Translations under genes and position numbers: made by a program
Notes under the pieces: generated by a model
What the model was told of the DNA's origin: nothing
The model's input: only the letters and a program-made list of their open reading frames with translations
The model's database searches: none
Shown: piece after piece, positions 2,015 through 64,000 of the stretch
How positions within the stretch are numbered: position 1 is the stretch's first letter
Layout of the letters: every line of letters starts with the position of its first letter
NCBI RefSeq assembly: GCF_000150275.1
Contig: NW_002060959.1
Coordinates: forward strand, 1,023,746 to 1,087,745
Direction of reading: 5' to 3'
Origin: Trichoplax adhaerens
Taxonomy: Eukaryota > Animalia > Placozoa
DNA: 64,000 nucleotides

Positions 2015-5000
2015 ATGCAGTTCCATGCAAGTGGTGGCATTGATTCGGATTTCGAAGATGAACCGACTGAACAATCTGTTAGCACAGGAGAATCTAGGTA
2101 CGATCAAGTCATTAGCGTACTACTTACTCAACCGGATATACCGACTAGCATGTCATTTTGTTAAAGGAAAAACTGCCTGAATTTCAACAGTTGCAGCCAA
2201 GTACAAGTACAAGATGCATTTCTCCTACGAAGCCAGTGGATGATAATATTCAATCAACTGGCTTCGACGTAATGGCGAGCTGCAGTAGGCAAGACTACTT
2301 TACTGTACTGTATTGTACAGTACAAGGCAGCCTTTTACGCATAGTACACCAATTACTAGTAGTAACCATGCATTGGCGATAGGCTGCAATATTGCACATG
2401 GCTTCAATACTTGCAAATAGCGCTCTACATCAAAAGAGTAGTCGATCTCCATAAAAATATTCATCAGCCCAAAATAAGATTATCGTCAAGACCAGTATTA
2501 AGCAAACAATGTACGGTATCATGGCAACTGTTTTATTTTTGCAAAGATTCAAAAATTTGTAAACAATCTTGCTAACAAATATTTCCAGTATACAGTACAT
2601 CTATAGCTGAGCACATGATGCATGATAGAGTTGTCGAGAAATTGTGTATTGAGAGGATCAATTCCACAAATGACGATGTTGAAGCCAAAGCTTACAAACT
2701 ATCTAAACGTTTTATTTCAGTCAACCAGATAATATTAACACAGGGTCGAAAAGAAAACATTCAACAACAAAGCATGGTCAAGTCATACCCTCCAAAAGAC
2801 TTGCTGAAGATATCTATGAGGCGTCAGTAATAGGCAAAATACTATTAATCAACTATAATCCTTTATGCTGATTGACACTTTTCTATTTATCATAGGGAAG
2901 CTGCGAAGATTGATCGTGTACACTTCTTGGCTCTAGATGCTGTAACTGTCTAACAACTTGATAATACACATATATTAAAATACAGTACTATTTATTTGGC
3001 TTTTATACGATTACGACAATACTATCTAGTTGATATAGTAAATACCAAGTAAATGAAATCGGCCAGTGCAAGATAATATCAAACAATATTTTTATACTAA
3101 TACAGTATGCGCGTCATAAAATAATGGTCAACAACTATATAAAGTACTACGGTGGGTCGATAAAGGATTTTCAACGATCCAGGTAAGCGATGTTGCCAAT
3201 AGTAGCATTATTTTATTACAAGTGATACTAATTGAAGGTATTAATGTATATTCAACGACGATGATCAAAGGTCATTAAGGGTAGATAGTACAATCAAAGT
3301 ATTAAATTGTACCCCTTATTATGACCTTATAGCAGTTATGCTATACAAAAATTTGAACGATAGCACTGATAGTACTGTAGCATGATGCGACTTTTCATTA
3401 TTACTTGCAATTCTACCATTCATTAACTGAGTTGGAGTAATTGCTGATAAAAACTTTCCTGTTTAAATAGGGCAAATGATAAAAACGATTATGACATTCT
3501 ACGAGAACAGCATCGGTAAGTAATGAAAAATAAAAGCAAACGTGTCCTGTAAAACTAACCTTAAATGCAATTCATTTACCCCTATGCTAATGCTTAGATT
3601 TGTTTGGGAAGATGATGATGATAATGATAATAACTGGTAATTTACAATGTATTTTATTTTTTAAAAAGTTCACTTATTATAACTATGACATTCAAGATTG
3701 CTAGCATGAACACTTCTATCGATATCTGAGCAATGCATTCTTTAATAAATGTCTATCTAAGGGATAAGAGACTGGCAAAGAAATATTATGACCGTTTATA
3801 CAAAGAATACTGTGTTGCTGACTTGTCCAAATATAAAGAAAATAAAGTAACGTATATTGATACTGTACGGTAAACTTAATGTGATGATAACGTTCAAAAG
3901 TTAATGCTGTCATTCGACGAATTTAGATTGCTCTTCGTTGGCGAATAGAAAGAGAGGTTATAGGCGGCAAAGGTTAGCTTAACACTGACTTGGACATTAT
4001 AATTGTTGCATTATTGTAAAAGATCTATTCAATTTTTTCCTGCAGGTCAGTTCTTGTGTGGTAACTTGAAGTGTGGAGCAAGTGATAATCTGCGTAGCTG
4101 GGAGGTATGCTTTTCAATCATATAAAAATAACAGATATACACGTACTAGTGAGAATTTAAATACTGCAGATAAAACTACAGTATACGTATATCCTAGTCA
4201 CCGAAATACTCTAACGAAGAATTTTACCAACTCGACTACATCTTTTTTCAGGTAAATTTTGGATATGTCGAGCGTGGAGAAAAAAAGAATGCCTTGGTGA
4301 AGCTAAGTAAGCAAATAATCAATTTGGCTTGATTCATATCATCTTTCTACATGTACTTGACACCAATTTGTATTGTTTGGTAAAATGTAGGACTTTGCCC
4401 TAAATGCTCAGATAAGCTAAATTATCATCACAGGTAGGAACTGGCTACTAATATTTTTACTATCAGTATGAGCTGGAAACAAAAAATTGATCTCATGTTG
4501 TTGCTACTTTGCAAGTGATTTTAAAGCATACTGTATATAAAATCAAAGTTTGATTGTTTTATAGTTGTCAATATCTAGAGTGAGGTTTATACTTGCCTTT
4601 GCTACAAGTAGAATGTCTGGACGTGACAATGCATTAAAATATATCTGAATGTATTCATAACAAATTATAGACAACGTTTGGCCAAATCGAAAGTAAAGGC
4701 GGATAATTCACGTACAATGAAAAAAGATTCAAACGTGCCAAGCAGAGCAACACCAGAGAAAGGTAATTGCTATCTGTACTTTACATTATATTTTGTATTT
4801 GCTATATCATACTGACATTGGCATTAAAATTAATACGCTTATACCCACATAGAGCTTGATGTCGCACCGAAAGAAACCGGGCCAGGTAACTGCTGAGATA
4901 TCATTTCGAATTTATTGACCGCAATTCGATAATGGTAGAAAGATTGACTAACAATCCTTTACACCTCGTACTCTAGTTAGCAGCTTACGAGAGCGACTTA

Positions 5001-36322: not shown

Positions 36323-39300
36323 ATGGTAGGCAATAACGAGGATGACGATGTTGTTTGGGATTTTAAAATCTACAACAAAATTAAAAAGGGATCAACCAAA
36401 AGACCCAAGAAAAAAGCAAAAGGACGCAAATTAACGCTGAACATCACTCATTTTACCCGCACCTTTTCAGGTCAGTCAACTGTCGATAGGATAAACAACT
36501 CTTGAATCCATTATACAAGTATTGGACTAAAACCTACATAGTGCAAAATCCAATAGGTGTACAGTAATACTATTATTCGCAATACCTTCTGTACTACATG
36601 CATTCATCAACAACATCAATCTCCACGCGTCGATTCATTGATGCACAACCGACCCATTCTGTACAGTACTGTAATCATCATTTCATAACATAAATTCATA
36701 TCTCTTGTCTTATGCTAGGTTCTACACCGGAGACCTCAAAAAATGCAAATGATAATCCGACTACCAACGATAACGATGATGACGAGGTTATTATCGTATC
36801 AACTCCCCCGTCATCCTTGAGTAACAGCCAAAATTTAAAGAATCAAACCATCAATGGCATTCTCGATCCTATCCCAAGCGATATCAATCAAGAGGATAAG
36901 GATAATCATAACATGATGACAACTCAGACTGGAGCTCAAACTCAATGCAATCATCATCGTGACATTGATGAAGTTTCTAACTGCCCAAGTCGACAGGATA
37001 ATTCAGCTTTCCTTGAAAAAAACAATACAATACATCAATCATCTTCTGCAGACGCCTTCCAAAATAGTGATACACTACAAATGGATCAGGAGAATAGACA
37101 GGATGACGTTGCTGCTAACTCGAACCATGAATCTGTTTGTATCACAGACGAAGAAGGAGAAGATCAGCATAATTCAACGGCTGCAATGGATAACAGTTAT
37201 CTTCATTTGATGGAAGGCAGTGATGACGATATTGATGATCTAGTAGTCATCCAATCGCTAACTAGAGATCCTAGCCATTTACTTCTAGTCAAAAGTGATA
37301 GTGACATTGTTGATGCAGCCAAACAAGATAGCATCCAATCAACGACACAAGATCATGATGATAAAACGGTATCAGATACATCAACACCAATATCCAAGAA
37401 AGCTCCCAAGTTGTCATACTTCCAGAGGACATATCAGTTAGCACAGAAAAGGAAGAAAAGTGACATGCAACAGAGTTCTATCTTGAACTATTTTTCATGC
37501 CCTAACAAAATGGTGACCAAACCTAGCGTAAGCCAAAGCAAGAACAGCAGCCATAATCAGGAAAGTAAGCAATCTAATAAAATACGAAAATCCAACAAAT
37601 GGAATGACCCTAAAGGAAAGAGAAAATGTCCCTTTTATAAGAAAATCACTGGTAATGAGTAGCATATTGGTCGTAAAAATCACACATAGCTAGTGGATTA
37701 ATGTCAGCATGCATAATTAATCGATTCTTATTGTACTAAACTAAATTATCTGATAATTCTACAAGTACCATATACTGTACTAATAATGAACTTACTTCAT
37801 TCTCAATATGATTGCATGTCCTATCAAATAGGTACAACATTTTGCGTTGATGCGTTTAGCTATGGTCCAATCTCTGGCATAACTGCCTACTTTTTAAGTC
37901 ATTTTCATTCGGATCACTACTATGGGCTAAACAAAACTTTTAATGCTAAGCTTTATTGCAACAAGATAACCGCCAATTTGGTCAGTAGAATGTTACATGT
38001 CGAAAAGCAATACATCACAATTTTACCAATGCATCAATCAGTTGTAGTGGATGACGTCGAAGTTACGCTGTTAGACGCTAACCAGTAAGTACAATAAGAT
38101 CTGTTGCTTCTTATGAAAGCCACTTTATGCAGTATTCTAATAGCAAAATCATGACAGAATGATCAATGAAGCCTTTGGAGTAAGTTAATCTCTTCACTTT
38201 TGTAGTTGTCCTGGTTCTGCCATGTTTGTCTTCAGACTACGTAATGGCTCTGTTCACTTACACACAGGTATTGAAGGTTCACCAGAGATATACTTGTATA
38301 CTGTACTTTAGATATTAGTGAATGTGGCTCTGTACAAACGGATAGGTTTAACTCTTCATCATCATCCATATATTGTTGCATTAAATTGAAGACATTTTGT
38401 AGGAGATTTTCGAGCCTCAGAAGAAATGGAAAAATTGGATATACTAAAAAATAGTGTAATATCCGAACTGTATTTAGATACCACGTATGTATAGTATCAT
38501 CAGAAAAATTATCATTAGCTAAACTATTGCCTGCCAAGTGATTTTCAATTGTTCGTATTATCAAAATAATTACTACTACCAGATACTGTGATCCGAGCTA
38601 CGATTTCCCATCGCAAAAATTTGTGCTAGACTATGTATTGGCAACCGTCACCGACGCATTAAAATGTAACAAGCGTTGTTTAGTAGCTTGTGGAACATAT
38701 ACTATTGGTAAAGAAAAAGTTTTTCTAGGTAACATGGGCATTAGTCGTTTTATAGCATTTACCATACTCGTATTAATCAAATTAATTCTACATTAGCCAT
38801 TGCCAGGGCCCTGGAGTGCAAGGTATACGCTCAAAAGAATAAACTTGGAACGTTACAGTGTTTAGAAATTGAGAATTTTAAGACATTATTTACTTCCGAT
38901 CCACATTCTACTTTTCTTCATGTCTTACCAATTTGGTCCGTTAGTGCAAAGGTATGTTTAAATGATTGATAAAATATTTAACTTAGAAAATCGCGTTGAA
39001 ATGTTTTTAATGCGGCCAAGTACTTATTGCAATACTAGATTACAATCTATTATTGCACTTAATTTATGATGATTTGCAGTGCAAAAGTTGATATTAGTAA
39101 GATAATGAAATAAATCCAACATATTTTGATGAAACTGGACGCTAATATGACTATAAAATTTACGATATCCAGTTTCTTAGAAATTATTTAGACCAAAACG
39201 CAGATCAATTTGACTGTGCAATTGGATTTAAACCTACTGGATGGACTCATACGAATAATGTTACTGCTTCTGGAATTGTTGCCAGACAATATGGATCGAT

Positions 39301-44526: not shown

Positions 44527-47500
44527 ATGGGTAATCGATCTTTCAAGTCTACTATACGTATACCTCAACAAATTAAATCCCTCTTTGAAAAAGCTATAGA
44601 AAATCATCAATCCGGCAACCTTAATGAAGCCTTATCCAATTGTATACGAGTTTTGGATAAAATCCAAGCTACATCCCGGAGTACTATTGATCTTAATCGG
44701 ATGCGATGTGAGATTTATCTTCTTGTTGGCGATATATATATACAACAAAGTGAATGGATAAAAGCTAAAGAATTCAATGAAAAAGGACAAGAAATGGCCG
44801 AAAAGCTGCAAGAAAATGTAATCATTGTCCGATGCTTAGATCAACAAGGTGATATTCAAAAGGTGCAAGGAGATTTGAAGGGGGCATCGGATAATTATGC
44901 TAAATCATTGAGTATAAAGTTAAATTATTTAGGCAAGGAAGACCTAGATGTCAGTAATTCATATGACCGGATAGGAAATATACATTATGCTCAATGCAGA
45001 TATGACGAGGCTCTCTCTATGCATGAAAAATCACTCAAAATTCGATTATCAGCCCTTGGTCACAATCATTCTGATGTGGCTAAATCTTATAGCAATATTG
45101 GAGAAAGCTATTGGGAACAGAGTAAATATGAAGAGGCTATTTGTATGCATGAGAAATCGCTCAAAATTCGATTATCAGTTTTTGGCCTTAATCATCCTGA
45201 TGTTGCTACATCATATAATAACTTGGGAAATGTCCAGGCTGATCAAGGCAAGCAGAAAGAGGCCATTTCTATGTATGAGAAGTCGCTCAAAATTCGCTTG
45301 CAAGTTCTTGGTCATAATCACTTCGCTGTTGCTCAATCATACAATAATTTAGGAAATATCTATGCTGATCAAGGTAAGTATGAAGAGGCTATATCTATGT
45401 TTGAGAAATCACTCCAAATTCGATTGTCGATTTTTGGTCATAATCATGCAGATGTTGCTACATCATATAACAACTTGGGAACTATATTTTATGATCAGGG
45501 CAAGCATGAAAAGGCTCTCTCTATGTATGAGAAGTCTCTCAAAATTCGATTGTCAGTCCTTTGTAGCAATCATCTCGATGTTGCCCAATCGTATAACAAT
45601 ATCGGTCTTATATATGGTGATCAAGGCAAGCACGAAGAAGCTATTTTTATGTATGAGAAATCACTTAAAATTCGATTATCAGCTCTAGGTCATAATCATT
45701 GTGTCGTTGCTCAATCGCACAATAACCTGGGAAATGTCTTTGCAGATCAGGGCAAGCATGAAGAAGCTATTTCTATGTATGAGAAATCGCTTAAAATTCG
45801 ATTATCACTTCTAGGTCCTAATCATGTTGCTGTTGCTACATCATATAATGATGTGGGAACTATATATTGTGATCAAGGAAAATACGACGAGGCCATTTCT
45901 ACGTTTGAGAAATCAGTCAAAATTCAGCTGTCAGTTCTTGGTCCTAATCATCCTACTATAGCTCAATCCTATAACAACATCGGAAATGTATATTCTCATC
46001 AAGATAGGCACGAAGAAGCTATTTCCATGTATGAAAAGTCACTCAAAATTAATTTACTAGTCTTTGGTCACAATCATATAAGTGTTGCTGCATCATATAA
46101 TAACATGGGGAATGTCTTTAAAAATCAGAGCAAGTATAATGAAGCGGTCACTATGTATGAGAAATCGCTCAAAATTCAACTTTCAAACTTTGGTCACGAT
46201 CATCCCGATATTGCTTCATTATATAATAACATGGGGAATGTCTATGCTGATCAGGAGAAGCATGAAGAAGCGATTTCCATGTATGAGAAGTCACTTAAAG
46301 TTCGATTATCAATCCTTGAGAACAATCATCCCGATATTGCTGCATCCTATAATAACATTGGGGTCGTTTATAGGAAGCAGACTAAATATGAAGAAGCTAT
46401 TTCCATGTTTGAGAAATCGCTCGAAATACAATCATCAGCCCTGGGTTACAATCATCCTGAAGTTGCCAAATCCTATAGCAACATGGGAAAAGTTTATTGG
46501 AAGCAGAGTAAATATGAAAATGCCATATCTATGTATGAGAAATCACTCAAAATTCGATTGTCAACTCTTGGTAGCAATCATTCTGAAGTTGCCAAATCAT
46601 ATGACGACCTGGGAGAAGTCTATAGGAAGCAAAGTAAGTCTATGGAGGCTCTTTCTATGTACGAAAAGTCGCTCAAAATCCGATTATCAGTTTTTGGTCA
46701 CAATCATCCTGCTTCCGCTCAGTCATATAACAACATTGGACTAGCATATTGTGATCAAGGCAAGCATGAAGAGGCCATTTCTATGTATGAGAAATCACTT
46801 AAAATTCAATTATCAGTCCTTAATCATAATCATCCTGATATTGCTATGGCTTACGGAAACCTAGGAATTGCCTATTCTCTCCAGGCCAAATATGAAGAGG
46901 CTATTTCTATGTATAAGAAATCGCTCGAACTTCAATTGTTAGCCTTTGGTACTAATCATCCCGATGTTGCCAAAACATATAACAACATGGGAACCGTCTA
47001 TAGTGATCAGGGAAAGTATGAGGAGGCAATTTCTATGTATAATAAGTCACTCAAGATTAAGTTATCAATCTTTGATCACAATCATCCCGAAGTTGATAAA
47101 TTATACAACAACATGGGGATTGTATATTTTCATCAAGATAAGCATGTAGAAGCCATTCGTATATTTGAAAAATGCCTCAAGATTGTTCTATTGATCTTTG
47201 GCCATAATCATGAACGCGTTGCTGCAACTTATAATAATATGGGAAATGTCTACAAAAACCAAGGCAAATATGAAGAAGCTATTTCTATGTATGAAAAGTC
47301 ACTTAAAATACAAATGTCAGTTCTAGATCATAATCATCCTGATGTTGCTGCATCATACAATAACATGGGAAATGCCTATAAAAATCAGGGCAAGCATGAA
47401 GAAGCTATTGCTATGTATGAGAAGTCTCTTAAAATTCGGTCATTAGTACTTAGCCACAACCATCCTGATATTGCGGCATTATATGACAACATAGGAATTG

Positions 47501-48714
47501 TATACTCTTGTCAAGGTAAATATGAGAAAGCTAATTCTGCGCTTGAGAAGTCACTTAAAATTCGATTATCAGTCTATGATAGCAAGCATCCCGATATTGC
47601 AGCATCCTACAACAACATGGGCGAAGTCTACAGGCAGCAGAGCAAACATAAAGAGGCCATTTCTATGTTTGAAAAGTCACTCAAAATTCGACTATCTGTC
47701 CTTGGTGACAATCATTGCGATACTGCTGCTTCCTATAATAACATAGGAGAAGTCTATTGGAATCAGGGTAACCACGAAGAGGCTATTTATATGCATGAGA
47801 AGTCGCTCGAAATTAGATTGTCAGTTCTTGGTTGCAACCATTCCGATGTTGCTCAATCCTATAATAACATTGGCCTTGTATATTATGATCAGGGCAACTA
47901 TGAAGAGGCTTTACCTATGTACCAGAAGTCACTTAAAATTCGATTATCAGTCCTTGGTCACGAACATTCCGCTGTGGCCCAATCATATAACAATATTGGA
48001 GCTGTTTACTATGCTCAAGGAAATCATGAAGAGGCTCTATCAATGTATGAGAAGTCACTTAAAATTCGATTATCTGTTCAAAGCCACAATCATCCTGATG
48101 TTGCCCAATCATATAATAACATCGGCTTTATATATTGCAATCAGGGCAGGCATGATGAGGCTCTATCTATGTACGAAAAGTCACTTGAAATTCGATTATT
48201 AATCCTTGATGATAATCATCCCGCTATTGCCCAGTCATATGACAACATAGGAAATTTATATGATGATCAGGGCAAGGATGAAGAAGCGATTCCTATGTAT
48301 GAAAAATCACTCAAAATTCGATTATCGGTCCTTAAAGATAATTATCCCGACGTCGCTGCATCACAGAATGTAAGAACTGTGCGCTTTCGTCAGAGCAAAC
48401 ATGAACGGGCTATTTCTTGGTATGAGAAATCACTCGAAAATAAAGTGTCTGCTCTTGATCAAAATCACCCCGATACTGCGATGTCATACAGGAATCTTGG
48501 AAATATCTATTCTCGCCAGTGCAGGCATGAAGAGGCTATATCTATGTACGAAAAATTACTCAGAATTCAATTATCAGACTTAGGTCACAATCATCCACAA
48601 GTCGCAATATTATATTACAAGATAGGAAGTGTCTACGATAGCCAGGGCATGTATGATGAGGCCCTATCAATGTATGAGAAATCATTTGAAATTTTATCAT
48701 CGCAATCATCATAA
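44527..48714 (+). CDS. Single-exon tetratricopeptide-repeat protein, 1395 aa, ~30 42-aa repeats (kinesin light chain/nephrocystin-3-type TPR)
   Basis: Uninterrupted ORF with consensus HPDVAxSYNNxGxVYxxQGKxEEAISMYEKSLKIRLSxLGxN. Confidence 0.95.
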   Translation: MGNRSFKSTIRIPQQIKSLFEKAIENHQSGNLNEALSNCIRVLDKIQATSRSTIDLNRMRCEIYLLVGDIYIQQSEWIKAKEFNEKGQEMAEKLQENVIIVRCLDQQGDIQKVQGDLKGASDNYAKSLSIKLNYLGKEDLDVSNSYDRIGNIHYAQCRYDEALSMHEKSLKIRLSALGHNHSDVAKSYSNIGESYWEQSKYEEAICMHEKSLKIRLSVFGLNHPDVATSYNNLGNVQADQGKQKEAISMYEKSLKIRLQVLGHNHFAVAQSYNNLGNIYADQGKYEEAISMFEKSLQIRLSIFGHNHADVATSYNNLGTIFYDQGKHEKALSMYEKSLKIRLSVLCSNHLDVAQSYNNIGLIYGDQGKHEEAIFMYEKSLKIRLSALGHNHCVVAQSHNNLGNVFADQGKHEEAISMYEKSLKIRLSLLGPNHVAVATSYNDVGTIYCDQGKYDEAISTFEKSVKIQLSVLGPNHPTIAQSYNNIGNVYSHQDRHEEAISMYEKSLKINLLVFGHNHISVAASYNNMGNVFKNQSKYNEAVTMYEKSLKIQLSNFGHDHPDIASLYNNMGNVYADQEKHEEAISMYEKSLKVRLSILENNHPDIAASYNNIGVVYRKQTKYEEAISMFEKSLEIQSSALGYNHPEVAKSYSNMGKVYWKQSKYENAISMYEKSLKIRLSTLGSNHSEVAKSYDDLGEVYRKQSKSMEALSMYEKSLKIRLSVFGHNHPASAQSYNNIGLAYCDQGKHEEAISMYEKSLKIQLSVLNHNHPDIAMAYGNLGIAYSLQAKYEEAISMYKKSLELQLLAFGTNHPDVAKTYNNMGTVYSDQGKYEEAISMYNKSLKIKLSIFDHNHPEVDKLYNNMGIVYFHQDKHVEAIRIFEKCLKIVLLIFGHNHERVAATYNNMGNVYKNQGKYEEAISMYEKSLKIQMSVLDHNHPDVAASYNNMGNAYKNQGKHEEAIAMYEKSLKIRSLVLSHNHPDIAALYDNIGIVYSCQGKYEKANSALEKSLKIRLSVYDSKHPDIAASYNNMGEVYRQQSKHKEAISMFEKSLKIRLSVLGDNHCDTAASYNNIGEVYWNQGNHEEAIYMHEKSLEIRLSVLGCNHSDVAQSYNNIGLVYYDQGNYEEALPMYQKSLKIRLSVLGHEHSAVAQSYNNIGAVYYAQGNHEEALSMYEKSLKIRLSVQSHNHPDVAQSYNNIGFIYCNQGRHDEALSMYEKSLEIRLLILDDNHPAIAQSYDNIGNLYDDQGKDEEAIPMYEKSLKIRLSVLKDNYPDVAASQNVRTVRFRQSKHERAISWYEKSLENKVSALDQNHPDTAMSYRNLGNIYSRQCRHEEAISMYEKLLRIQLSDLGHNHPQVAILYYKIGSVYDSQGMYDEALSMYEKSFEILSSQSS

Positions 48715-50906: not shown

Positions 50907-53900
50907 TCAGATAATACAATCTCCAGTTTGGGCAACCTATCTTATTACTTCGAAGTATCATCTAGGTTAACACTTTATTTTTAAAATTGCGCCCATTCTG
51001 AGTAAGGTAAAAATCGAACTTTTACCTCCACCATTCCACGCAGTAATCTTTCCAGACGTTGCATGTCATCTTCTTTGGATGAAATATTGAAACGTTGGAC
51101 TTTAAAATTATGAATTTCAGTCACTTGGTGTGAATGAGTGATGCGTTCTGACTTAACTTCTGAATAGACTGCATCGGCTATTAACGGTGCAGCCACCGCG
51201 GGTAAAGCTTCTTCCATGGGTTGAACGTCCGCTTTTAAATTATCTCCTATAGATCGAATCTTTGGACCTTTTACTTCAAAATGACCAATTTTACCTACTT
51301 GATATGAAGCTGCAGCGGGTTCTGGATAAGCTGCATCGGCTATTAAAGGTGCAGCCACCGCGGGTAAAGCTTCTTCCATGGGTTGAACGTCCGCTTTTAA
51401 ATCATCTTCTACAGATCGAATCTTTGGACCTTTTACTTCAAAATGACCAATTTTACCTACTTGATATGAAGCTGCAACGGGTTCTGCATGAGCTGCATCG
51501 GCTATTAAGGGTACAGCCACCGCGGGTTGAACATCCGCTTTCAAGTTATCTTCCATAGATCGAATCTTTGGACCCTTTACTTCAAAATGACCAATTTTAC
51601 CTACTTGATATGAAGCTGCAACGGGTTCTGCATGAGCTGCATCGGCTATTAAAGGTACAGCCACCACGGGTAAAGCTTTTTCCATGGGTTGAACGTCTGC
51701 TTTTAAATCATCTTCTACAGATCGAATCTTTGGACCTTTTACTTCAAAATGACCAATTTTACCTACTTGATATGAAGCTGCAACGGGTTCTGCATGAGCT
51801 GCATCGGCTATTAAAGGTACAGCCACCACGGGTAAAGCTTCTTCCATGGGTTGAACGTCCGCTTTTAAATCATCTTCTACAGATCGAATCTTTGGACCCT
51901 TTACTTCAAAATGACCAATTTCAGCTGCTTGATTTGAAGCTGCAACGGGTTCTGGATTAGCTGCACCGGCTATTAACGGTATGGCTGCCACAGGGAAAGA
52001 CTCCTTCGTATATTGAACTTCCGCTTTCATATTATCTACATTTTCAGAACAGACTAACTCTGAAATTTCGGATAATGACTGTATGCTACTGTACGGCTAA
52101 TATATTGGCAACTATATATCTAGATTTATCATCAGATTGCACTATGACTGTATTTATATCGCCAATGTGATAGCTAACGATACCTGTCTGGATTTCCGAA
52201 TGTAGCTTGAAGTCCATATCAGGAACGTGATGATCTCCATCGATACTCGGAATATCGGGCTTCTCTAGGCTAATATTACCATCTAAGATATAAATTTTAC
52301 TAACGTCAGTATTATCGTTGACAGACAAACTTGCTTATCGTAAATTGAATCAATAACATACTAACCTGGCATTACTCCTGGTAAAATTTCACCGCTACCC
52401 ACATCAAATTGACCATCCCTTGGAGATTCTTCTGGTTCTGCTTCTTTGGAATTTATTCGGGTAATCTACAAAAGTGTTAATAATACTTTAGTTATCATAT
52501 TACTTCTAATGCAATCCACACTGTTAGCACGACATGTCTGCATTTAATTATTTGCCAGTTGAACGGTATTTATCTAACTCGAGATTAGCGATTGCATTAA
52601 AAATCTGTAATTAAATAATAATTATAAATTACATATCGGTATTACTATCGGTTTACAAATGCACCTTTCTAAAGAAACGACTAGCTAGTTTTGAGATTGA
52701 GACTCTTGTTTTCTTTGTTTTATCGATGCCTAATTTTAGATCATCTTCAGTTGGTTCGGTCTGTTCTTCATATTCTACCGGTATGCCATATTCAACTGCT
52801 TCTATATCAGCATCTGCGACCATATCTGGAATTAGCAAGCTATTTGTTGCTTGAGGTGAAGGAACACTTTTTGTAACTTCTGTAGTATATAGTTGATCTC
52901 AATTAGCATTAATGTCATTTCCCATATCAGAATTAACATTAGGTTTAACACTAGCATTTGCCAATTTCCTGCTTTACCTGTTTCGTATCTTGTAACACTT
53001 TTCAATTGTAGAGCACTACTTTCAACAGAAACCTACAAATTACAGTAAAAACACGATTGCCAATAATATTTAACTCATCACATGATTTAGTTCATCATAC
53101 TTATTCATCCATTTTTTAAATTCATACCCCAAACTCCAATTTAGACGGCTCCATTTCAGGCATATTAACTGACATCTTTTTCGCACTCGAAAATTTGCTA
53201 GAAGCACTTGAACTTGATGCTTTAGATGAACTCGATGATGTTGAGGATGTCCTGCTGTAAACACGTGACGAGAGTATTCCTGGACGTTCTTTCTCTTCTC
53301 TATCCAGTAAACTAAAATCAATCTTGACTGGAATTGGTTTATCTGCAGGAGCTATTTCATCTTCATGTTGTAGTGGTAACACTTCAATATCCATGTTGTT
53401 GTCCTTATCTGGTAATTCTTCTGGTAAATTTATAGTTATTTCTGGTTCTAGAATCAGATCATCAGGTACTTCTTCTACTGTTCTATCTTCAGTTTGATTA
53501 ATCTCTTCTTCTACTATTTCATTTGGTTCTTCTCTATCAAATATACTGAAATCAATCTTAACCGGTAAAGATTTAGTATCTGGAGCAATTTCCAATTCCA
53601 TTTCTTGCGTCGATTCCATATCGTCGCCAGGCATTTTATATTGGAGGTCGAGATCTTTCGGTACTTCAGCCGTAACATTGAAGTTAGTACTTAAGGTTGG
53701 TTCTACAATTCTTGTAGGCTGTTCAGGCTTGTTAAAATCGTCTTTATCTGGTAAGCCTGCGGACAGTCCAAAAGCTATTTCTGGTCGGAAATTCATTTCG
53801 TCAGGTACGTCTTCTACTTTCATATCTCCTATAGGACTAGTTCCTTCTTCTACAATTCCAGTAGGCTGTTCAGGCTTGTTAAAATCGTCTTTATCTGGTA

Positions 53901-56900
53901 AGTCTGCGGACAGTCCAAAAGTTATTTCTGGTCGGAAATTTATTTCGTCAGGTACATCTTCTGCTTTTATATCTCCTATAGGACTAATTCCTTCTTCTAC
54001 AATTCCAGTAGGCTGTTCCGGCTTGTTAAAAGCAATGCCTAAGTTTGGTTCTTGAGGTCGAGCAAGGATTGCTGTATCGAAATCGTTCGGTGTATCTGGT
54101 TTATCTTCTTCTTTAATTGTTGCTAAACCGGCCATATCTGGTCTCTCTATTGGCTCAGCATCGATTTCGATATCGAGCTTAGGTCTTTCATGACTTAAAG
54201 CTCCTAACACTCCTATTGTAGGAATAGCTTGAGGTACTACGTTTTCAGGTTGATTTTCTTCATCTGATTTAATCTACATATAATATAGAGTACGTGCAAT
54301 ATGAAATATATATTTATACAGTATTATACTTTCATAGTTACGTAGCTATTTAACGTAACGGGTTTAAATCAATTTAATTACCGGAGCTTGTTCGTCTTTA
54401 TCATCGATTTTCTTAGGCTTTTTCTAGCGAGAATAAAATAACATTTAATAATGAATACACCTAGACACATATTACGAGTACGCTTACGCATAAGTATTTA
54501 AACTTACGGTAAGGACGAGACGTTTAGCTTTCTTTCCTAGTTTTTTCATTCTTTTAACAATTTTACGTTGTCGTCGTTTTTTATCCTTGTATACTGGATA
54601 AGATAATTCTCCCGCATATATTACTTCGCCTGTTTCTGGTACGACAATTTTACCTCTTCTATCTACTTCATTTTCATCTTCAGTAGAAGTACCTCCATCA
54701 GATTCAGTCGTAGCATCGGTCGATAATACGCTATCTCTTTGAGGGCTCAAATTTATATCGCTTTCATATTTTGGCAAGTTCATCTAATCAGTAAATATCA
54801 AATAATAAAACAATTAATTATTAGTTCATATAGTATATCAAAGTATACTTCTTATAACACGCCAAGATAACTATATAAGAATATGTTAAGAAAGGTTAAA
54901 TTATTTACTATTATACTGTACGTACAAGTAAATAAATATTAAAAGTATCACATACTCGTATTATTTACATTCATATTGAGATTTAGTGTTAATTCTAGTT
55001 TTACCTCAACATCAAAATCTGGAGACTTTGGCTGATCTTCTATTTCAAGGTTAGCACTAAAGTCTGGTATTGCAGCGGCCGCAGCGATTTCTCCTTCATC
55101 GATTGACGGCTGTGGAAGTACATCAGGTTGTTCGTATTCTTGCACGCTCTTTAATTCCGGAGCTTGCATTTCAGCAGAAACCTACAAAATAAGTAAGGTA
55201 AACACTATTGTAATTGATGTCTAAGTTTCTTATGCGTACCTGATAAACTTTACGTGCATCTATTCTAGCTATAGTTATACTGTATATTATCATACCCCGA
55301 ACTCTAATTCAGGTGGCTTTATCTCAGGTGTATTTACAAACATTCTTTCCGCACTCGATGATTTACTAGAAGTACTTGAATTGGATTCCTCGGATGAGCT
55401 TGACGATGTCGACGATGTTCGACTACCAGAAATACGTAGCGGTGGTATTTCTGGATAAGTTATCTCTTCTTGTGGTACATCTTTAATATGAGCATCTACT
55501 CCAGGTAAAGTTTGTTGTACTTCATATGCCATACCAATTTGTAGCGCTGTCTCTGTTTCTGCTCTATATTCATACGATGTCGAAAACTTAGTCATGCTTA
55601 TATTGGTTGCTACTGTAGTGTTTCTTTCGGTATGAATAATTGATGTTCCTTCTTTGTTAATATCATCTACATGCTGTAAATGCCAGTTTCTCGTATCTAT
55701 ATCGTCTTTACTTGGTAAACCTACGGGTAAGCCAAAAGTTATTTCTGGTCGGAAATTCGTTTCGTCAGGTACATCTTCTGCTTTCATATCTTCTATAGGA
55801 CTAATTCCTTCTTCTACAATTCCAGTAGGCTGTTCAGGCTTGTTAAAATCGTCTTTATCTGGTAAGCCTGCGGACAGTCCAAAAGTTATTTCTGGTCGGA
55901 AATTCATTTCGTCAGGTACATCTTCTACTTTCATATCTTCTATAGGACTAGTTCCTTCTTCTACAATTCCAGTAGGCTGTTCAGGCTTGTTAAAATCGTC
56001 TTTATCTGGTAAGTCTGCGGACAGTCCAAAAGTTATTTCTGGTCGGAAATTCATTTCGTCAGGTACATCTTCTACTTTCATATCTCCTATAGGACTAGTT
56101 CCTTCTTCTACAATTCCAGTAGGCTGTTCAGGCTTGTTAAAATCGTCTTTATCTGGTAAGCCTGCGGATAGTCCAAAAGTTATTTCTGGTCGGAAATTCA
56201 TTTCGTCAGGTACATCTTCTGCTTTCATATCTTCTATAGGACTAGTTCCTTCTTCTACAATTCCAGTAGGCTGTTCAGGCTTGTTAAAATCGTCTTTATC
56301 TGGTAAGCCTGCGGACAGTCCAAAAGCTATTTCTGGTCGGAAATTTATTTCGTCAGGTACATCTTCTGCTTTCATATCTTCTATAGGACTAGTTCCTTCT
56401 TCTACAATTCCAGTAGGCTGTTCAGGCTTGTTAAAATCGTCTTTATCTGGTAAGCTTGCGGACAGTTCTAAAGCTATTTCTGGTCGGAAATTTATTTCGT
56501 CAGGTACATCTTCTGCTTTCATATCTTCTATAGGACTAGTTCCTTCTTCTACAATTCCAGTAGGCTGTTCCGGCTTGTTAAAAGCAATGCCTAAGTTTGG
56601 TTCTTGAGGTCGAGCAAGGATTGCTGTATCGAAGTCGTTCGGTATATCTGGTTTATCTTCTTCTTTAATTGTTGCTAAACCGGCCATATCTGGTCTCTCT
56701 ATTGGCTCAGCATCGATTTCGATATCGAGCTTAGGTCTTTCATGACTTAAAGCTCCTATCACTCCTATTGTAGGAATAGCTTGAGGTACTACGTTTTCAG
56801 GTTGATTTTCTTCATCTGATTTAATCTACAAATGAATATAGAATACGTGCAATATGATATATATGTATACAGTATTATACTTTCATAGTTACGTAGCTAT

Positions 56901-59900
56901 TTAACGTAACGGGTTTAAATCAATTTAATTACCGGAGCTTGTTCGTCTTTATCATCGATTTTCTTAGGCTTTTTCTAGCGAGAATAAAATAACATTTAAT
57001 AATGAATACTCCTAGACACGTATTACGAGTACGCTTACGCATAAGTATTTAAACTTACAGTAACGACAAGATGTTTAGCTTTCTTTCCTAGTTTTTTCAT
57101 TCTTTTAACAATTTTACGTTGTCGTCGTTTTTTATCCTTGTATACTGGATAAGATAATTCTCCCGCATATATTACTTCGCCTGTTTCTGGTACGACAATT
57201 TTACCTCTTCTATCTACTTCATTTTCATCTTCAGTAGAAGTACCTCCATCAGATTCAGTCGTAGCATCGGTCGATAATACACTATCTCTTTGAGGGCTCA
57301 AATTTATATCGCTTTCATATTTTGGCAAGTTCATCTAATCAGTAAACGTCAAATAGTAAAGAAATCAATTATTACTATATTCTGTTGCAGTATATGTAAG
57401 CAATTATATGATATACGTATCATGTATGTATCTATTTCCGGTTATAGTAATCATACCTCAAATTCTAATTCAGGTGGTTTCATCTCAGGTGTATCAACTG
57501 ACATTCCTTCCGCATTTGAAGCTTTGTTGGAATCACTCGAACTTGATGATGTTGATGAGGTTCTGCTAGCAGAACTACGAGGAGATGGTATTTCTTCATC
57601 TAGTAAACTAAAATCAATCTTGACTGGAATTGGTTTATCTGCAGGAGCTATTTCATCTTCATGTTGTAGTGGTAACACTTCAATATCCATGTTGTTGTCC
57701 TTATCTGGTAATTCTTCTGGTAAATTTATAGTTATTTCTGGTTCTAGAATCAGATCATCAGGTACTTCTTCTACTGTTCTATCTTCAGTTTGATTAACCT
57801 CTTCTTCTACTATTTCATTTGGTTCTTCTCTATCAAATATACTGAAATCAATCTTAACCGGTAAAGATTTAGTATCTGGAGCAATTTCCAATTCCATTTC
57901 TTGCGTCGATTCCATATCGTCGCCAGGCATTTTATATTGGAGGTCGAGATCTTTCGGTACTTCAGCCGTAACATTGAAGTTAGTACTTAAGGTTGGTTCT
58001 ACAATTCTTGTAGGCTGTTCAGGCTTGTTAAAATCGTCTTTATCTGGTAAGCCTGCGGACAGTCCAAAAGCTATTTCTGGTCGGTAATTTATTTCGTTAG
58101 ATACATCTTCTACTTTCATATCTTCTATAGGACTAGTTCCTTCTTCTACAATTCCAGTAGGCTGTTCAGGCTTGTTAAAATCGTCTTTATCTGGTAAGTC
58201 TGCAGACAGTCCAAAAGCTATTTCTGGTCGGAAATTTATTTCGTCAGGTACGTCTTCTGCTTTCATATCTTCTATAGGACTAGTTCCTTCTTCTACAATT
58301 CCAGTAGGCTGTTCCGGCTTATTAAAAGCAATGCCTAAGTTTGGTTCTTGAGGTCGAGCAAGGATTGCTGTATCAAAATCGTTCGGTATATCTGGTTTAT
58401 CTTCTTCTTTAATTGTTGCTAAACCGGCCATATCTGGTCTCTCTATTGGCTCAGCATCGATTTCGATATCGAGCTTAGGTCTTTCATGACTTAAAGCTCC
58501 TATCACTCCTATTGTAGGAATAGCTTGAGGTACTACGTTTTCAGGTTGATTTTCTTCATCTGATTTAATCTACATATAATATAGAATACGTGCAATATGA
58601 GATATATATGAATATACAGTATTATACTTTCATAGTTACGTAGCTATTTAACGTAACGGGTTTAAATCAATTTAATTACCGGAGCTTGTTCGTCTTTATC
58701 ATCGATTTTCTTAGGCTTTTTCTAGCGAGAATAAAATAACATTTAATAATGAATACACCTAGACACGTATTACGAGTACGCTTACGCATAAGTATTTAAA
58801 CTTACAGTAACGACAAGATGTTTAGCTTTCTTTCCTAGTTTTTTCATTCTTTTAACAATTTTACGTTGTCGTCGTTTTTTATCCTTGTATACTGGATAAG
58901 ATAATTCTCCCGCATATATTACTTCGCCTGTTTCTGGTACGACAATTTTACCTCTTCTATCTACTTCATTTTCATCTTCAGTAGAAGTACCTCCATCAGA
59001 TTCAGTCGTAGCATCGGTCGATAATACACTATCTCTTTGAGGGCTCAAATTCATATCATTTTCATATTTTGGCAAATTCACCTGATCAGTAACATTAAAT
59101 TAATAGGATAAATAATAAAATTAGGGCTTTTAATGTAAGTAAATTCGCTATCGTACTAGTAAAATATAAAATTAACGTACTAAAGCATTGAAAGCACATC
59201 GCACACTATTTATATTGTAAATGTTAAAATTTCTCCATAATTTATAGTATTTCTAATAAAACTGGTTGATGGAAAGGTAGCACAGAGTAACTTTCATCCA
59301 TTCTATAAAAATTTGGCATCGGTATTAAAGTAACGTTTTTGTAACCAACTATTTCAAACAAGACAATAGTTACTTTTATAAAATGGAATTGAAGCTGAAT
59401 AATTCTATAGTATAGCTATACTACCTCATAGGAAGTTTCTGGCATCAGTTCATGATCAGGTTGAGTTAGTTGACTAGGGTTTTCTGTTGTTATCTCTAGT
59501 GCGACAGGTTCCATCTCAGGCATTTCCACTTCTTCTGCCATGATAGAATCGTTTAAAGTTATTAAGTAATACATTAACTTATTATAGTTGATTCTAAACG
59601 ATCATGAAATTGCAGAGCCAACTAGTAAACTAGCTAACAATATACTTGCCTTGTGCATCAGGAGAGAACTCTTGCCCAAAAGCAAAGCTTGCTTGAAGTT
59701 CTGGTAAAGGTGCTTTTTCTGCATTCACTTCTGGTAATTCTGGCTGAGATGCAACTAACTGTTCAGGACTTACTTCTAAATCTGGTTTATCCAAAGTTTC
59801 CACTTCGCCCTCTATCGACGGATGTTGCAATTGGTCTTCCATATCAAAGTTGTCACTAAAGTCTGGAATAACAACAGCTGCAGAAAGTGCTCCTTCGATA

Positions 59901-62900
59901 ATAGGAGTTTGGGGAGATTCATCAACAAGTTCTTGGTTGGTACTGAAATCTGGTCTGTCAATGTCTGAAGTTATATTCTCATCAACTACAGGTAACTGCG
60001 GTTTTCCGTTAAAATTTATGGTGTAATCAGGCTTAGCCAAAGTGGTGTTGTCTTCATCAACTTGTGGTTTATCTAGGTTAATATTATAATCCAGTTGACT
60101 AGAAGGCAAAGTAAGCTCTTCTTCACCAGGTGAACGTAGTGGATGCTGTAAACCCGCATTGACATCAAAGCTGTAATTAGGTTGATCAGCGAGTATAGTA
60201 GCTGGCTCTTCATCTACTTGACTAGAAGGCAAAGTAAGCTCTTCTTCACCAGGTAAACGTAGTGGATGCTTTAAACCCGCATTGGCATCAAAGCTGTAAT
60301 CAGGTTGATCATCGAGTATATCAACTGGCTCTTCATCTACTTGACTAGAAGGCAAAGTAAGCTTTTCTTCACCGGGCGAACGTAGCGGATACTGTAAACC
60401 CGTATTGACATCAAAGCTGTAATTAGGCTGATCAGCGAGTATAGCAGCTGGCTCTTCGTCTACTTGACTAGAAGGTAAAGTAAGCTCTTCTTTACCAGGC
60501 GAAAGCAGTGGATGCTTTAAACCCGTATCGACATCAAAGCTGTAATTAGGTTGATCAGCGAGTATAGCAACTGGCTCTTCATCTACTTGACTAGAAGGTA
60601 AAGCAAGCTCTTCTTCACCAGGCGAAGGTAGTGGATGCTGTAAACCCGCATCGACATCAAAGCTGTAGTTAGTTTGATCAGCAACTATGGCAGTTGGTTC
60701 TTTATCTACTTGTGGTTGATCAAGTTTTAAGTCAAGTGCGCCATTAATACTAAAATCGGGTTTATCTGTAACTGAATCGATAGCATCTTCATTGACTTGA
60801 GGCTGTTCTAAATCGATATTACCACTACAACTTTCATCTGCTACAATTGCCGCTACAGTTATTGCCTCTTCGACAACTGGAACTTCCCATTCTTTGCTAA
60901 CAGTTCCATTAACATTGTAGTTACTTTCGATATTGGATACTAGACTATCCTCAGCTTTACTTAGGGATTTCTCGTCCTTACTAGTAACCAATTCTGCATT
61001 AGTTATAACTTGTTCCGAAGATTGACGAATATCTTTCTGTAGCTGACTTCCTGATATATTGACTACTGTATTCTCATTTTGGCAAATTTCTAGCCTATTT
61101 TCCGCTTTTTGAACAAGACCTTGATCTCTCTTAAAAATTATATATTCATTGTGTGTTTGGTCGACATTCTTTAGCTCAACAATCTGATATTCTTGACCTA
61201 GTTGAATATGGAAGGCAGAAGAACCTGACTCGATTATACTTGAAGTAGTCGTAGTCCAGTTTTGGCTGACTGTGGTAACATGTTCAGTTTGCTGCTGTCT
61301 TAATTCCTTAGTAGCTACAGTTTGATACTGACTCTCACTATAATTAGTAGACGATTGAGCTGTGCTACTTGCTTCCATAATATTTTGTTGTTGTATTGTA
61401 TGTTGAGCTGTATGCTCTATTCCATGCTGCATAGAATGTTCTAATTTATGATCTTCCGAATGCTCTATCCTCTGTTGGACTGCGTGATCTACCCTACGCT
61501 CCATGGTGGTTTCTACTCTTTGTTCCATTACTCGTTCTGTTGAGCCTTTTCTCCTTCTGAAAGAAATTCTGCGTTCCTACAATAATTAAGAAGAGTAAGG
61601 GAGATAAACTCAGTATTATTATGGCATATAAACTTATCCATTAATTAAATGTCAATAAAAATTTGTAACAATCTGTTAATTTTATTAACCGCAACTTCAC
61701 ATACCAACTGTTTAATTTCTATTTCATGTTCTTGATCGTCGTCAGGTTCCAAATCCTCCTCATATTCTGGTGTATAATCCTGTTCAAATGCGAATTCATC
61801 TTCATCACTGGAATGATCTGATGGCATTTCTTCCATATCTTGTTCTACGGCTATATTTGACTTATTAAATGAAATTGAGAGAGATTTTAGACAATGATAT
61901 ACTCTTATTTTCGGTACGATTTAAATTTTACTATTTGCAAATCTTACGGCATAGAAGATGTGAAGGCAATCAAAAATCAATAACAGCGGTAGTAAACAGT
62001 TATCTAATCCTACAACTTAATTTATCAGATTCTGGACCTACATCACTAAACCAACTCCGCCGTTGATTGTAATTTTGGAATGTTTGCGAGGATAGTAATG
62101 TTTGTGGGCTTAATGCATTCTCTTCCAGTTTATTGTCAGATGCTTTATAGCCAATAGAAGTAGGCGGTGAACGTATTCTTCTCAATTCAGATGGTATTTT
62201 ATGGGATGTCGATAAGCGTTCCTTATTAGGATCTGGCAGTCGATAGTAGTAACCGGTTCTACAACCCTACATTACGTTCAAAAATAATAACAATTTTTTC
62301 AAGTGAATAAGCTTGGACTTACAAAAATGCTGCACTATTATCATGTAGCGTAACTCGTAATATACGTATAATGTCCATATTTTATCAACTGGTTTAAAAT
62401 GGTTACCCTCATATCCAAATTTCTTATATAAGCTTCAAATTCGATCTTGCATTTGTGTAATTTTTCCTTTGAGTAGCTTCCATTTTCAATAGAATAATCT
62501 ATTTCGACTGGAATTTGATGTAAATTATGTAGTCCTAGGGCTAAGTAGCTGAGCTAAAATGAAAATGGAAGTGAATTCAATTGGGTTGAATAATTTTGAA
62601 CTTGGAAGTTTCGTAGTATCGATTATTCCCAACGGATATAAAGTATATTGTTCCAGGACAATTTTTAGGCTGTTTTTAAAGGCAGTATAATATTCTAATG
62701 TACAGGATTGAAATAATTGTAAAATAATACCATTTTGAAAGTCTATATTATATCTACGCCATGGATGGATAAGATGGTTATTATTGAACTAGCGCCTAAA
62801 GTATCGAAGAGTTACTATAATTCAACGGTCTGATATGATAAAATCTGGTAATACGAGTAAAGATCAATGATAAACTACTTCGACTATATATACAGTATAC

Positions 62901-64000
62901 TATCACTTTGACTATATATATACTATCGTCTATTCCCAACGAATGTAAAGTATATTGTTCCTGGACAATTTTTAGGCTATTTTTTTAAAGGCAGCATAAT
63001 ATTCTAATGTACAGGACTGAAATAACTGTAAAATTATACCATCTTGGAAGTCTATACTATATCTACGCCATGAATGGATAAGATGGTTATTATTGAACTA
63101 ACGTCTAAAGTATCGAAGAGTTACTATAATTCACCGGTCTACTATGATCAAATCTGGTAATACGAGTAAAGATCAAATAATAATAAATCACTTACTGGAA
63201 AATGAGACTATTCAAACTTGCAGTAGTAACATTAAATTCTACTTACTTCAACATCGCAAGCCTTAATCACACGTGTTGCATTGTAGAAAGCTTCTTCAAC
63301 AGTTAATCCAGTAACAAAAAATCCGTTATTTTTCATCAGTACAATCTATTCATAAAATAAGTAAGGAGTACTCATCAAATAGCTCGTTATCGGATATCTA
63401 TTGATTCAAATAGAAACCATGTTACTTATAATAAATTAGTAATGCTCTATTCCTGATTTACTATTGAAACGATTTACTTTGGTGATATAAACGGTGACAA
63501 CATTTATTTTTCAAACCTGCGCTGGGGATCGAGCGAATTCGCTAACAAACGCTTGTCTATCCTTATCATCCAAGGCTGTCGGATTGCAGTTAAATTGAAA
63601 TTGAGGAAAAATCTGTAAATTACAATCCGAAGGGATACTGTTTAGTGTAAGTGCCTTGATCGGTCGTTAAAATGATTCAAATGAGAATAAATTCTATTTT
63701 ATGGTGGATAACTATCACTCAGATATGCTAGATTGAAATTCGAAATACCGCAATGACTCGAACTGTAACTAAGCTTGTTCGATGGAATAAAATGGACTGT
63801 AATATCAAATCCAATTTACACCTAAAGTCTTGTCTAAAGTACACTAATCTCTATTTTACGACTAGCGCTACAACAAGCTAACCTCTGTGGCTTCTTGGCA
63901 TAATGGTAGTAAGCCAGCTTTGGTAGCGGATATCTGAAAGAGTAATGATCATATTTAAGATAGATCCATGTACAGTAGTTAGCATATCAGAGACCTTCCT
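50907..64000 (-). CDS. Adducin-family protein (class II aldolase-like head/neck) with giant repetitive acidic tail; 5' end lies beyond the window
   Basis: Exons in 63933-62040 give ISATKAGLLPLCQEA, IVLMKNNGFFVTGLTVEEAFYNATRVIKACDVE, EFEAYIRNLDMRGCRTGYYYR and SPPTSIGY. These match recalled adducin motifs ([44 protein letters not shown]). Downstream exons chain in compatible phases to ~51026. The terminal exon (VAQTGDCII*) is tentative. Confidence 0.8.
51140..52030 (-). repeat. Coding tandem repeat, 162 bp/54 aa, 5 units plus a diverged partial; one unit has an in-frame 18-bp deletion
   Basis: AGATCGAATC at 51251, 51413, 51557, 51719 and 51881; unit KADVQPMEEALPVVAVPLIADAAHAEPVAASYQVGKIGHFEVKGPKIRSVEDDL. 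Confidence 0.95.
53128..59081 (-). repeat. Triplicated 3-exon cassette including introns (59081-57457, 57334-55296, 54783-53128)
   Basis: Near-identical exons NLPKYE..KKLGKKAK, KKPKKIDDKDEQAP and IKSDEENQPE.., with near-identical introns (e.g. CATAGTTACGTAGCTATTTAACGTAACGGG) in all three copies. Confidence 0.95.
55701..56583 (-). repeat. Coding tandem repeat, 147 bp/49 aa, 6 units (about 2.3 units in each of the other two cassettes)
   Basis: Unit FNKPEQPTGIVEEGTSPIEDMKAEDVPDEINFRPEIAFGLSAGLPDKDD; TCCAGTAGGC at 55821 and 55968. Confidence 0.95.
60093..60715 (-). repeat. Coding tandem repeat, 123 bp/41 aa, 5 units
   Basis: GACTAGAAGG recurs every 123 bp from 60097; unit PSSQVDEEPxAILADQPNYSFDVxxGLxHPLxSPGEEELTL. 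Confidence 0.95.
62624..63176. repeat. Intronic direct repeat of ~245 bp (62624-62867 and 62931-63176)
   Basis: TATTCCCAACG..AAAGTATATTGTTCC..GTAAAGATCAA occurs twice, 307 bp apart, within an adducin intron. Confidence 0.93.

Follow-up and report, generated by a model that had tools for sequence, protein, structure and literature searches.

An adducin gene from the tandem pair of Trichoplax adhaerens, with a modular repeat tail that may reach giant size

A tandem adducin gene in Trichoplax adhaerens

The stretch of DNA analyzed here, which we call the window, covers 64,000 nt of the placozoan Trichoplax adhaerens (contig NW_002060959.1, positions 1,023,746 to 1,087,745). We have extended it by 20 kb (L003 and L004), and positions above 64000 carry on the numbering of the window. 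The locus found at its end is one of the two tandem adducin genes of this species (paralogue A), and it is the orthologue of a protein of Trichoplax sp. H2 (H2 below) named "Protein hu-li tai shao". The adducin head and neck are followed by a large repeat exon, T1, which ends in a stop codon, and then by a series of exons which code for repeats. On balance we believe, from comparisons of sequence, that all of them belong to one gene, in which the T1 stop would lie in a removable interval and the frame would continue into an array of tail modules. A giant form of about 3,100-3,200 residues is plausible and would require that the T1 stop be spliced out. The features of the locus are listed in Table 1.

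The region has a G+C content of about 33-38%. It contains long open reading frames (ORFs) on the minus strand, from 61528 down to 50981, and adducin-like pieces at 62-64 kb. The start of paralogue A is outside the window, at 65248, and its first two exons (h1 and h2) are beyond the window end. A word-index search with the 632-aa ORF of T1 gives a sole match, P0110 ("Protein hu-li tai shao [Trichoplax sp. H2]", 1,106 aa), which carries the Aldolase_II domain (PF00596). Spliced mapping of P0110 on T. adhaerens gives nine exons, all of them with GT-AG introns and phase 0, and 1096 of the 1106 residues are identical. The match of P0110 to Aldolase_II covers practically the whole profile (E 1.4e-24, profile positions 2-182 of 183), and exons h2 and h5 also match this profile when they are searched as such. 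The top non-placozoan relatives of P0110 residues 1-470 are all named Hts or adducin (insect Hts and adducins), with 27-35% identity over 68-86%, the best of them with 32-35% over 70-86%. The mapping, the profile match and these relatives together indicate that head, neck and T1 form a real adducin gene, as the initial annotation had proposed. The in-phase union of head and neck with the first long minus-strand ORF is also borne out, since the junctions at 62042, 61860-61705 and 61576 are exon borders of P0110. Separate aldolase-type PF00596 loci are present elsewhere in the T. adhaerens genome.

The aldolase domain of a Trichoplax adducin (paralogue A or B) has been described as diverged in the catalytic triad of zinc-binding histidines and as a binder of Mud, like Drosophila Hts (PMC12599920). 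This paper and work on Drosophila are the only literature found on Trichoplax Hts or on a giant adducin. When head exon 1 was compared with 1.84 billion representative proteins (HMMER), the only matches were ordinary adducins and short fragments from placozoans, and none of them was a full T. adhaerens model. The protein annotated by the Joint Genome Institute (JGI), TRIADDRAFT_13778 (XP_002116789.1), is partial, with 197 aa, and mixes both paralogues in a chimera: Exon 1 of paralogue B (L004 about 3305-3760) supplies the N-terminus, and exons 1-2 of paralogue A, at a distance of 12 kb, supply the rest.

Evidence for a single gene

The exons found after T1 are called X, B1, C1, B2, C2, B3, C3, m1, E, G1, F and D. 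They form a chain with canonical splice sites and matching phases. B and C are exon types, each of them with three copies. The complete chain was assembled in order to check frame, length and composition and for one local BLASTP comparison with P0111 (see below), while all other searches were made exon by exon.

The second adducin gene, paralogue B, is located upstream on the same strand (-), at 67486-77733 (L003:3486 to L004:3733). It corresponds to P0111 of H2 ("Beta-adducin", RDD43560.1), a single 1,779-aa model which maps cleanly on T. adhaerens. Residues 3-709 of paralogue A align with residues 5-694 of paralogue B (39% identity, E 5e-146, local BLASTP against P0111). Further along, residues 802-886 of paralogue B are matched by every B exon of paralogue A plus the beginning of the C exon that comes after it (37%, E about 1e-9). 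The T1 part and the B/C part are thus both collinear in paralogue B, which indicates that one ancestral gene carried both. Paralogue B also has its own terminal exon, with a threefold repeat, and an internal patch with a lysine run. The B exon type is found in only four copies in the 105.6-Mb genome (six-frame search): three in the tail of paralogue A and one in paralogue B.

Another placozoan gives a similar picture. Exon B1, used in a word-index search, matched a single Logan fragment, and this led to a contig (L011) from a different placozoan. It contains the end of a C2-type exon, an exon which we call 't', a B exon and the start of a C exon, all in one frame-compatible chain with GT-AG introns and phase 0. 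The end of the C2-type exon, with the part which is specific for C2, shows 35% identity to 55296-55700 (E 3e-8). The 't' exon has 65 aa, and its last 31 residues are 61% identical to the C-terminus of T1 (E 2e-11), while the B exon is 52% identical. Since the 't' exon is placed between C-type and B-type exons, the end of T1 belongs to the same t-B-C module array as the downstream exons. A scan of JGI metagenomes with the B-exon alignment gave no match.

Comparison with H2 gives signs of coding constraint. Only 2 of 1,374 nt differ in the head exons, and about 1% in the tail exons, where the sole indel has 21 nt and none breaks the frame. There are 28 non-synonymous and 21 synonymous differences. 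About 2.3% of intron positions differ, a value estimated from alignment totals and exon differences.

In summary, the related placozoan loci, paralogue B and L011, hold T1-like and B/C modules in one chain, and this comparative evidence favours T1 and the downstream exons being parts of one gene.

The stop codon of exon T1 and routes past it

T1 is a 642-aa repeat exon of 1.9 kb whose first 250 aa, approximately, are homologous to paralogue B. When it is not spliced it reads into an in-frame TAG at 59630-59632. The H2 model stops at the same place, which gives the 1,106-aa form. It had been proposed that the head exons can be spliced in phase into the long minus-strand ORFs. This holds from the head to T1, but the stop codon had been overlooked, and any continuation requires a bypass. 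There are two candidate routes.

The first route would use a GC-AG intron in phase 1, from AAG/GCAAGT to the CAG acceptor before 59534 (115 nt downstream), where exon X opens. AAG/GCAAGT is the extended consensus of GC-type donors, and this nonamer is expected 0.43 times per window, counting both strands. The T1-like exon of paralogue B ends with a GT donor in phase 1. After an intron of 91 nt comes a mini-exon of 18 aa, which is conserved in another placozoan (L005). When both DNA sequences are aligned, the GC donor of paralogue A falls on the GT donor of paralogue B, and exon X falls on the mini-exon.

The second route would use an internal GT donor of T1 (GAA/GTAAGT), which could be joined to B1. 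The 't' exon of another placozoan, homologous to the end of T1, stops 9 codons earlier than this internal donor, with GAA/GTAAGA.

Two other observations were set aside. A 52-nt GT intron (AA/GTATAT to TTTAG) was rejected, as it would insert a hydrophobic peptide coded by AT-rich DNA. The residues read through after the GC donor resemble the start of the paralogue B mini-exon, a likeness which we discount because it follows from the donor consensus.

With every exon included, the first route would give 21 exons and 9,576 nt without any internal stop, coding for a protein of 3,191 aa (355 kDa, isoelectric point 4.46). The second route would give about 3,113 aa, by arithmetic. The initial annotation had suggested more than 3,000 aa inside the window and a tail of about 2,900 aa. 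The size is about right for the whole chain, but 2,991 aa are inside the window and the other 200 (h1 and h2) are at positions +269 to +1248 beyond its end; the tail after the neck has 2,785 aa. As for the suggestion of a giant adducin, the head is in fact joined to a long tail, 650 aa of which are already present in the public H2 model, while a further 2,050 aa, approximately, may belong to the same mRNA, as sequence comparison suggests. Whether the product has 1,106 aa or about 3,200 aa may depend on one GC-AG intron.

One gene or two

Several points weigh against a single gene with a giant product. The only public model of this paralogue, made for H2 with MAKER, has its end at the T1 stop. 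A separate gene in that annotation, with 1,027 aa and without any Pfam domain, starts 89 bp downstream. These models were built with Trinity evidence (PMC6057997). We have rebuilt the downstream H2 gene from ORFs and splice sites (X, B, C, m1, E, G1, F, D), and the result has 1,021 aa instead of the annotated 1,027 aa, so that one junction differs from the one chosen by MAKER. An ATG just before exon X is in a good context, with A at -3 and G at +4. Both routes past the stop have weak points: GC donors are rare, and GAA/GTAAGT might be there by chance, since 0.74 matches are expected per window when both strands are counted. For GAAGTAAGT, three matches are observed, one of which is the true donor of exon h5. 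The B-C unit has three copies in T. adhaerens and one in H2. A further point is the MARCKS-related domain of adducins, which consists of a lysine run, then F/L-R-x-P-S-F, then another lysine run. A profile of this C-terminus, made from 23 bilaterian adducins, scores above shuffled controls in no exon of paralogue A, nor in P0111, so this defining feature of adducins is absent in a recognisable form. Finally, what we say below about the function of head, patches and spacers is inference only.

The H2 models suggest an alternative with two genes. The adducin would end at the T1 stop (1,106 aa) and a tail-only protein would start at the ATG before exon X, with about 2,090 aa in T. adhaerens (1,027 aa in H2), as a result of the fission of an ancestral long-tailed adducin. 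The MAKER models are split exactly in this way, and the in-frame T1 stop is found without a GT donor at the spot homologous to paralogue B. Nevertheless, that same position has a consensus GC donor, the 89-bp gap is too small to contain a 3' untranslated region, a promoter and a 5' untranslated region, and no poly(A) hexamer precedes exon X: Neither AATAAA nor ATTAAA appears from the T1 stop until 59134, which is 496 nt downstream and past exon X. Besides, paralogue B and another placozoan hold the modules in one chain. The H2 models neither prove nor exclude a split of paralogue A, and we consider that two genes are possible but doubtful.

A different objection is that the downstream ORFs might be non-coding, either satellite-like repeats or a decayed pseudogene. 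They do contain tandem repeats of 123, 147 and 162 nt and no Pfam family. On the other hand, all the repeat periods are multiples of three, and ORFs of 350-650 aa far exceed what is expected by chance in DNA with about 35% G+C. Every junction has a canonical splice site and a matching phase, a distant placozoan shows conservation of both the exon structure and the protein sequence, and the tail exons diverge less than the introns. We find it very improbable that these exons are non-coding.

Some ORFs of 98-317 aa are also found on the plus strand, antisense to the tandem repeats at 51262-51960, 53678-54055 and 55654-56607. They have no splice sites and no homologues. As they are unsupported mirror images of the repeat units, they should not be taken for genes.

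Copy number of the B-C unit

About 1,070 aa of the giant size are due to the three copies of the B-C unit. The B exons are 1,747 and 2,551 nt apart, while the repeat analysis gives a distance of 4,296 nt between C1 and C3. Comparison of 53128-59081 in T. adhaerens with the corresponding H2 region (L008:16155-17829) shows a 4.3-kb block difference within the B-C array. H2 can be aligned to both B1-C1 and B3-C3, and its single copy begins like B1 and ends like C3. Such a hybrid copy is the expected result of either a 4.3-kb collapse or an unequal crossover. The difference may be due either to strain variation in the number of tail modules or to a collapse in the H2 assembly.

The opposite error would be that the three units were mis-assembled in the Sanger assembly of T. 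adhaerens. The giant size would then be partly an artefact, and the true gene, with one unit, would code for about 2,100 aa if its parts are joined. In favour of this, the copies share 96-100% identity along most of their extent, and H2, with its single unit, lacks the 4.3-kb stretch. But the three C exons differ in repeat number and in their unique ends, and the C2-specific end is conserved in L011, where a C2-type exon again precedes a B exon. The hybrid nature of the H2 copy also argues against this error, and there is no N in the window. We consider it rather unlikely. The different repeat numbers and unique ends of the C exons, together with the conservation of the C2 end, lead us to think that at least two C exon types are real and ancestral.

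Composition and structure of the tail

The 2,785-aa tail contains 20.9% Asp+Glu, 9.4% Lys+Arg and 8.8% Pro. The initial annotation had described an acidic repeat tail, rich in Pro, Glu and Asp, and the overall composition agrees with this. Nevertheless, the tail is not uniformly acidic, since polybasic B exons alternate with acidic C exons. There are three families of tandem repeats, with repeats of 41 aa (T1), 49 aa (C exons) and 54 aa (D). The B exons are net basic and have a conserved stretch rich in lysine and arginine, and exon E ends in another basic patch. We considered exon E and the B exons as possible MARCKS-related domains, but this was dropped after the profile failed, and they are taken as generic polybasic patches only.

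T1, X, the B exons, the C exons and G1-F have a negative charge-hydropathy index, which places them on the disordered side. This is not the case for m1-E and D. Both composition and index agree with the hydrophilic and probably unstructured tail which is typical of adducins. No tail exon matches any Pfam family. An AlphaFold2 model of exon D from its single sequence shows beta-rich repeats with low confidence (mean predicted local distance difference test, pLDDT, of 56), and we take it as uninformative and perhaps an artefact of the repeats. This model has no match in PDB at E <= 0.001, and a search of ESM Atlas with exon D gave no usable match. For the conserved module of T1 (200 N-terminal aa, alignment of three sequences) the model is uninformative, with a pLDDT of 46.

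A possible model

Our preferred reading is a single gene which could give two products. If the interval with the T1 stop is not spliced, the product is the 1,106-aa form. If it is removed, either by the GC-AG intron to exon X or from the internal GT donor to B1, the frame would be kept and would continue into a placozoan-specific array, in which polybasic B exons alternate with acidic C exons rich in Pro, Glu and Asp. The array would be closed by the second basic patch (exon E) and by the terminal exon D with its 54-aa repeats. In T. adhaerens the spliced product could be as long as about 3,110-3,190 aa, while the one B-C unit present in the H2 assembly would give about 2,100 aa.

From what is known of the family, head and neck would oligomerise at actin-spectrin junctions, and the acidic repeats would be putative disordered spacers. 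The repeated basic patches, putative binding sites for membrane, actin or calmodulin, are the only elements of the tail for which such binding is plausible.

A more ambitious proposal, which we put forward only tentatively, is a single Trichoplax adducin of about 355 kDa whose tail would alternate at least three polybasic patches, binding membrane or actin, with acidic disordered spacers. It would be a "giant" membrane-skeleton adaptor of independent evolution, and the number of its B-C units would vary between close strains. If this were true, the fully extended 2,785-aa tail would span about one micrometre, by our estimate, in an animal without muscles or nerves.

Features of the locus and neighbouring genes

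Table 1. Exons and candidate splice donors of paralogue A. Positions refer to the window unless L003 is given.
Feature	Position	Strand	Evidence or remarks
Exons mapped with P0110	65248-64880, 64499-64269, 63933-63883, 63612-63517, 63345-63247, 62553-62407, 62266-62042, 61860-61705, 61576-59633	-	Spliced mapping
Head exon h1	L003:880-1248 (64880-65248), beyond window	-	P0110 spliced mapping
Head exon h2	L003:269-499 (64269-64499), beyond window	-	P0110 mapping; PF00596, E 1.9e-10
Head exon h3	63883-63933	-	P0110 spliced mapping, GT-AG, phase 0
Head exon h4	63517-63612	-	P0110 spliced mapping
Head exon h5, C-terminal end of Aldolase_II	63247-63345	-	PF00596 match, profile positions 151-182 of 183; P0110 mapping
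Head exon h6	62407-62553	-	P0110 mapping; tblastn 100% match to P0110 residues 283-331
Neck exon	62042-62266	-	P0110 mapping; collinear with paralogue B neck
Short, very acidic exon (42% Asp+Glu)	61705-61860	-	P0110 mapping, composition
Exon T1	59650-61576	-	98% identical to P0110; conserved placozoan tail module, five 41-aa (123-nt) repeats, 't' module near end
Candidate internal donor in T1, GAA/GTAAGT, phase 0	59768-59776, GT at 59773-59772	-	Could splice directly to phase-0 acceptor of B1 at 59081
Candidate GC donor, AAG/GCAAGT, phase 1	59644-59652, GC at 59649-59648	-	15 nt before T1 stop; aligns with phase-1 GT donor of paralogue B
Exon X, acidic, 37 aa	59425-59534	-	First exon of separate H2 gene model; homologous to paralogue B mini-exon
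Exon B1, acidic half and polybasic stretch	58806-59081	-	Phase 0-0; ORF and splice sites
Exon C1, 49-aa (147-nt) acidic repeats	57457-58569	-	Phase 0-0; ORF, splice sites, repeat analysis
Exon B2	57059-57334	-	ORF and splice sites, B-type alignment
Exon C2, six 49-aa repeats and unique end	55296-56825	-	Absent from H2 assembly, conserved in another placozoan
Exon B3	54508-54783	-	ORF and splice sites, B-type alignment
Exon C3	53128-54273	-	ORF and splice sites, H2 comparison
Mini-exon m1	52978-53032	-	ORF and splice sites
Exon E, ends in second type of polybasic patch	52665-52879	-	ORF and splice sites; no Pfam match, no MARCKS-profile match
Exon G1	52366-52465	-	ORF and splice sites
Exon F	52184-52282	-	ORF and splice sites
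Last exon D, five 54-aa (162-nt) repeats and unique end	50981-52059	-	Stop at 50981-50983; AATAAA starts at 50979, overlapping the stop

Convergent with the adducin tail is a single-exon gene at 44527-48714 (+), also found in H2, which codes for a 1,395-aa protein made almost wholly of TPR_12 and TPR_10 repeats (19 and 28 matched stretches). At 36712-37662 (+), in a stretch (34-38 kb) which is locally richer in G+C, there is a 316-aa ORF rich in Ser, Asn and Asp, without any Pfam match. Its last residues seem to us to resemble the start of a nuclease domain of the SNM1/DCLRE1 type, and this ORF might be exon 1 of a gene of that type. In another placozoan (L005:240-1856, L009), the orthologue of paralogue B adjoins a hexosaminidase gene (Glyco_hydro_20), which matches the neighbourhood beyond the window end. 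The local order of genes is thus conserved between lineages of placozoans.

Comparison with known systems

Adducins cap the barbed ends of actin, recruit spectrin and are central to the spectrin-actin membrane skeleton, while placozoans are near the base of the animals. The presence in Trichoplax of two tandem adducins with unusually long, modular tails is relevant in this context. The public models are incomplete or inconsistent: The JGI protein joins pieces of both paralogues, while H2 has one locus split in two. The gene structure given here corrects them for studies of cytoskeleton evolution and for those who use these models, for example in work on the aldolase domain of Trichoplax adducin. 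The placozoan proteins of 1,106 and 1,779 aa are already public. What is new is that paralogue A probably runs on to about 3,100-3,190 aa, together with the modular t-B-C array and the candidate switch formed by the GC-AG intron or the internal donor.

The closest comparison is between both paralogues. Paralogue B has the same order as paralogue A: head, neck, T1-like exon, mini-exon, B-type exon, a later basic patch and a terminal repeat exon. It differs in having one B exon and no 49-aa C repeats, and it has a GT donor in place of the GC of paralogue A, with no stop there. Members of the adducin / Hu-li tai shao family (ADD1-3, Drosophila Hts) have the same head with an Aldolase_II fold, followed by a neck and a hydrophilic tail with basic patches. 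In Trichoplax the tail has from 650 to about 2,800 aa instead of about 300 aa and is formed by placozoan-specific repeat modules. Its basic patches are internal and repeated, while the C-terminal MARCKS-related motif is not detected by the profile.

Giant ankyrins (480-kDa ankyrin-G/B, Drosophila Ank2-XL) offer an analogy only: They are also membrane-skeleton adaptors which have been enlarged by very large exons, coding for extended, low-complexity sequence. The Trichoplax adducin belongs to a different protein family. The elastic linker which the initial annotation had suggested, by analogy with giant ankyrins, is a speculative idea, and so would be a function as an extended fibre.

Long adducins are not new, since predicted insect proteins with an adducin head reach 2,000-2,700 aa. 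For example, there is one of 2,714 aa in Rhagoletis and one of 2,047 aa in Cotesia, and the Hts proteins of Diachasmimorpha have 2,130-2,174 aa. Our search of representative proteins gave adducin-head proteins of 1,200-2,700 aa, whose tails contain 14-21% Asp+Glu. In these insect predictions, as in the long isoform of Drosophila hts (Ovhts, the source of HtsRC), the shared head and neck are joined to large lineage-specific C-terminal regions, which are acidic and rich in Ser. The insect tails have no sequence similarity to those of Trichoplax and do not contain a t-B-C array. In Drosophila, hts gives short and long forms from one gene, with shared head and neck exons, while the long form of Trichoplax is predicted from genomic sequence. 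By analogy with Drosophila hts, reading as far as the T1 stop or splicing it out might produce a short or a giant isoform, respectively.

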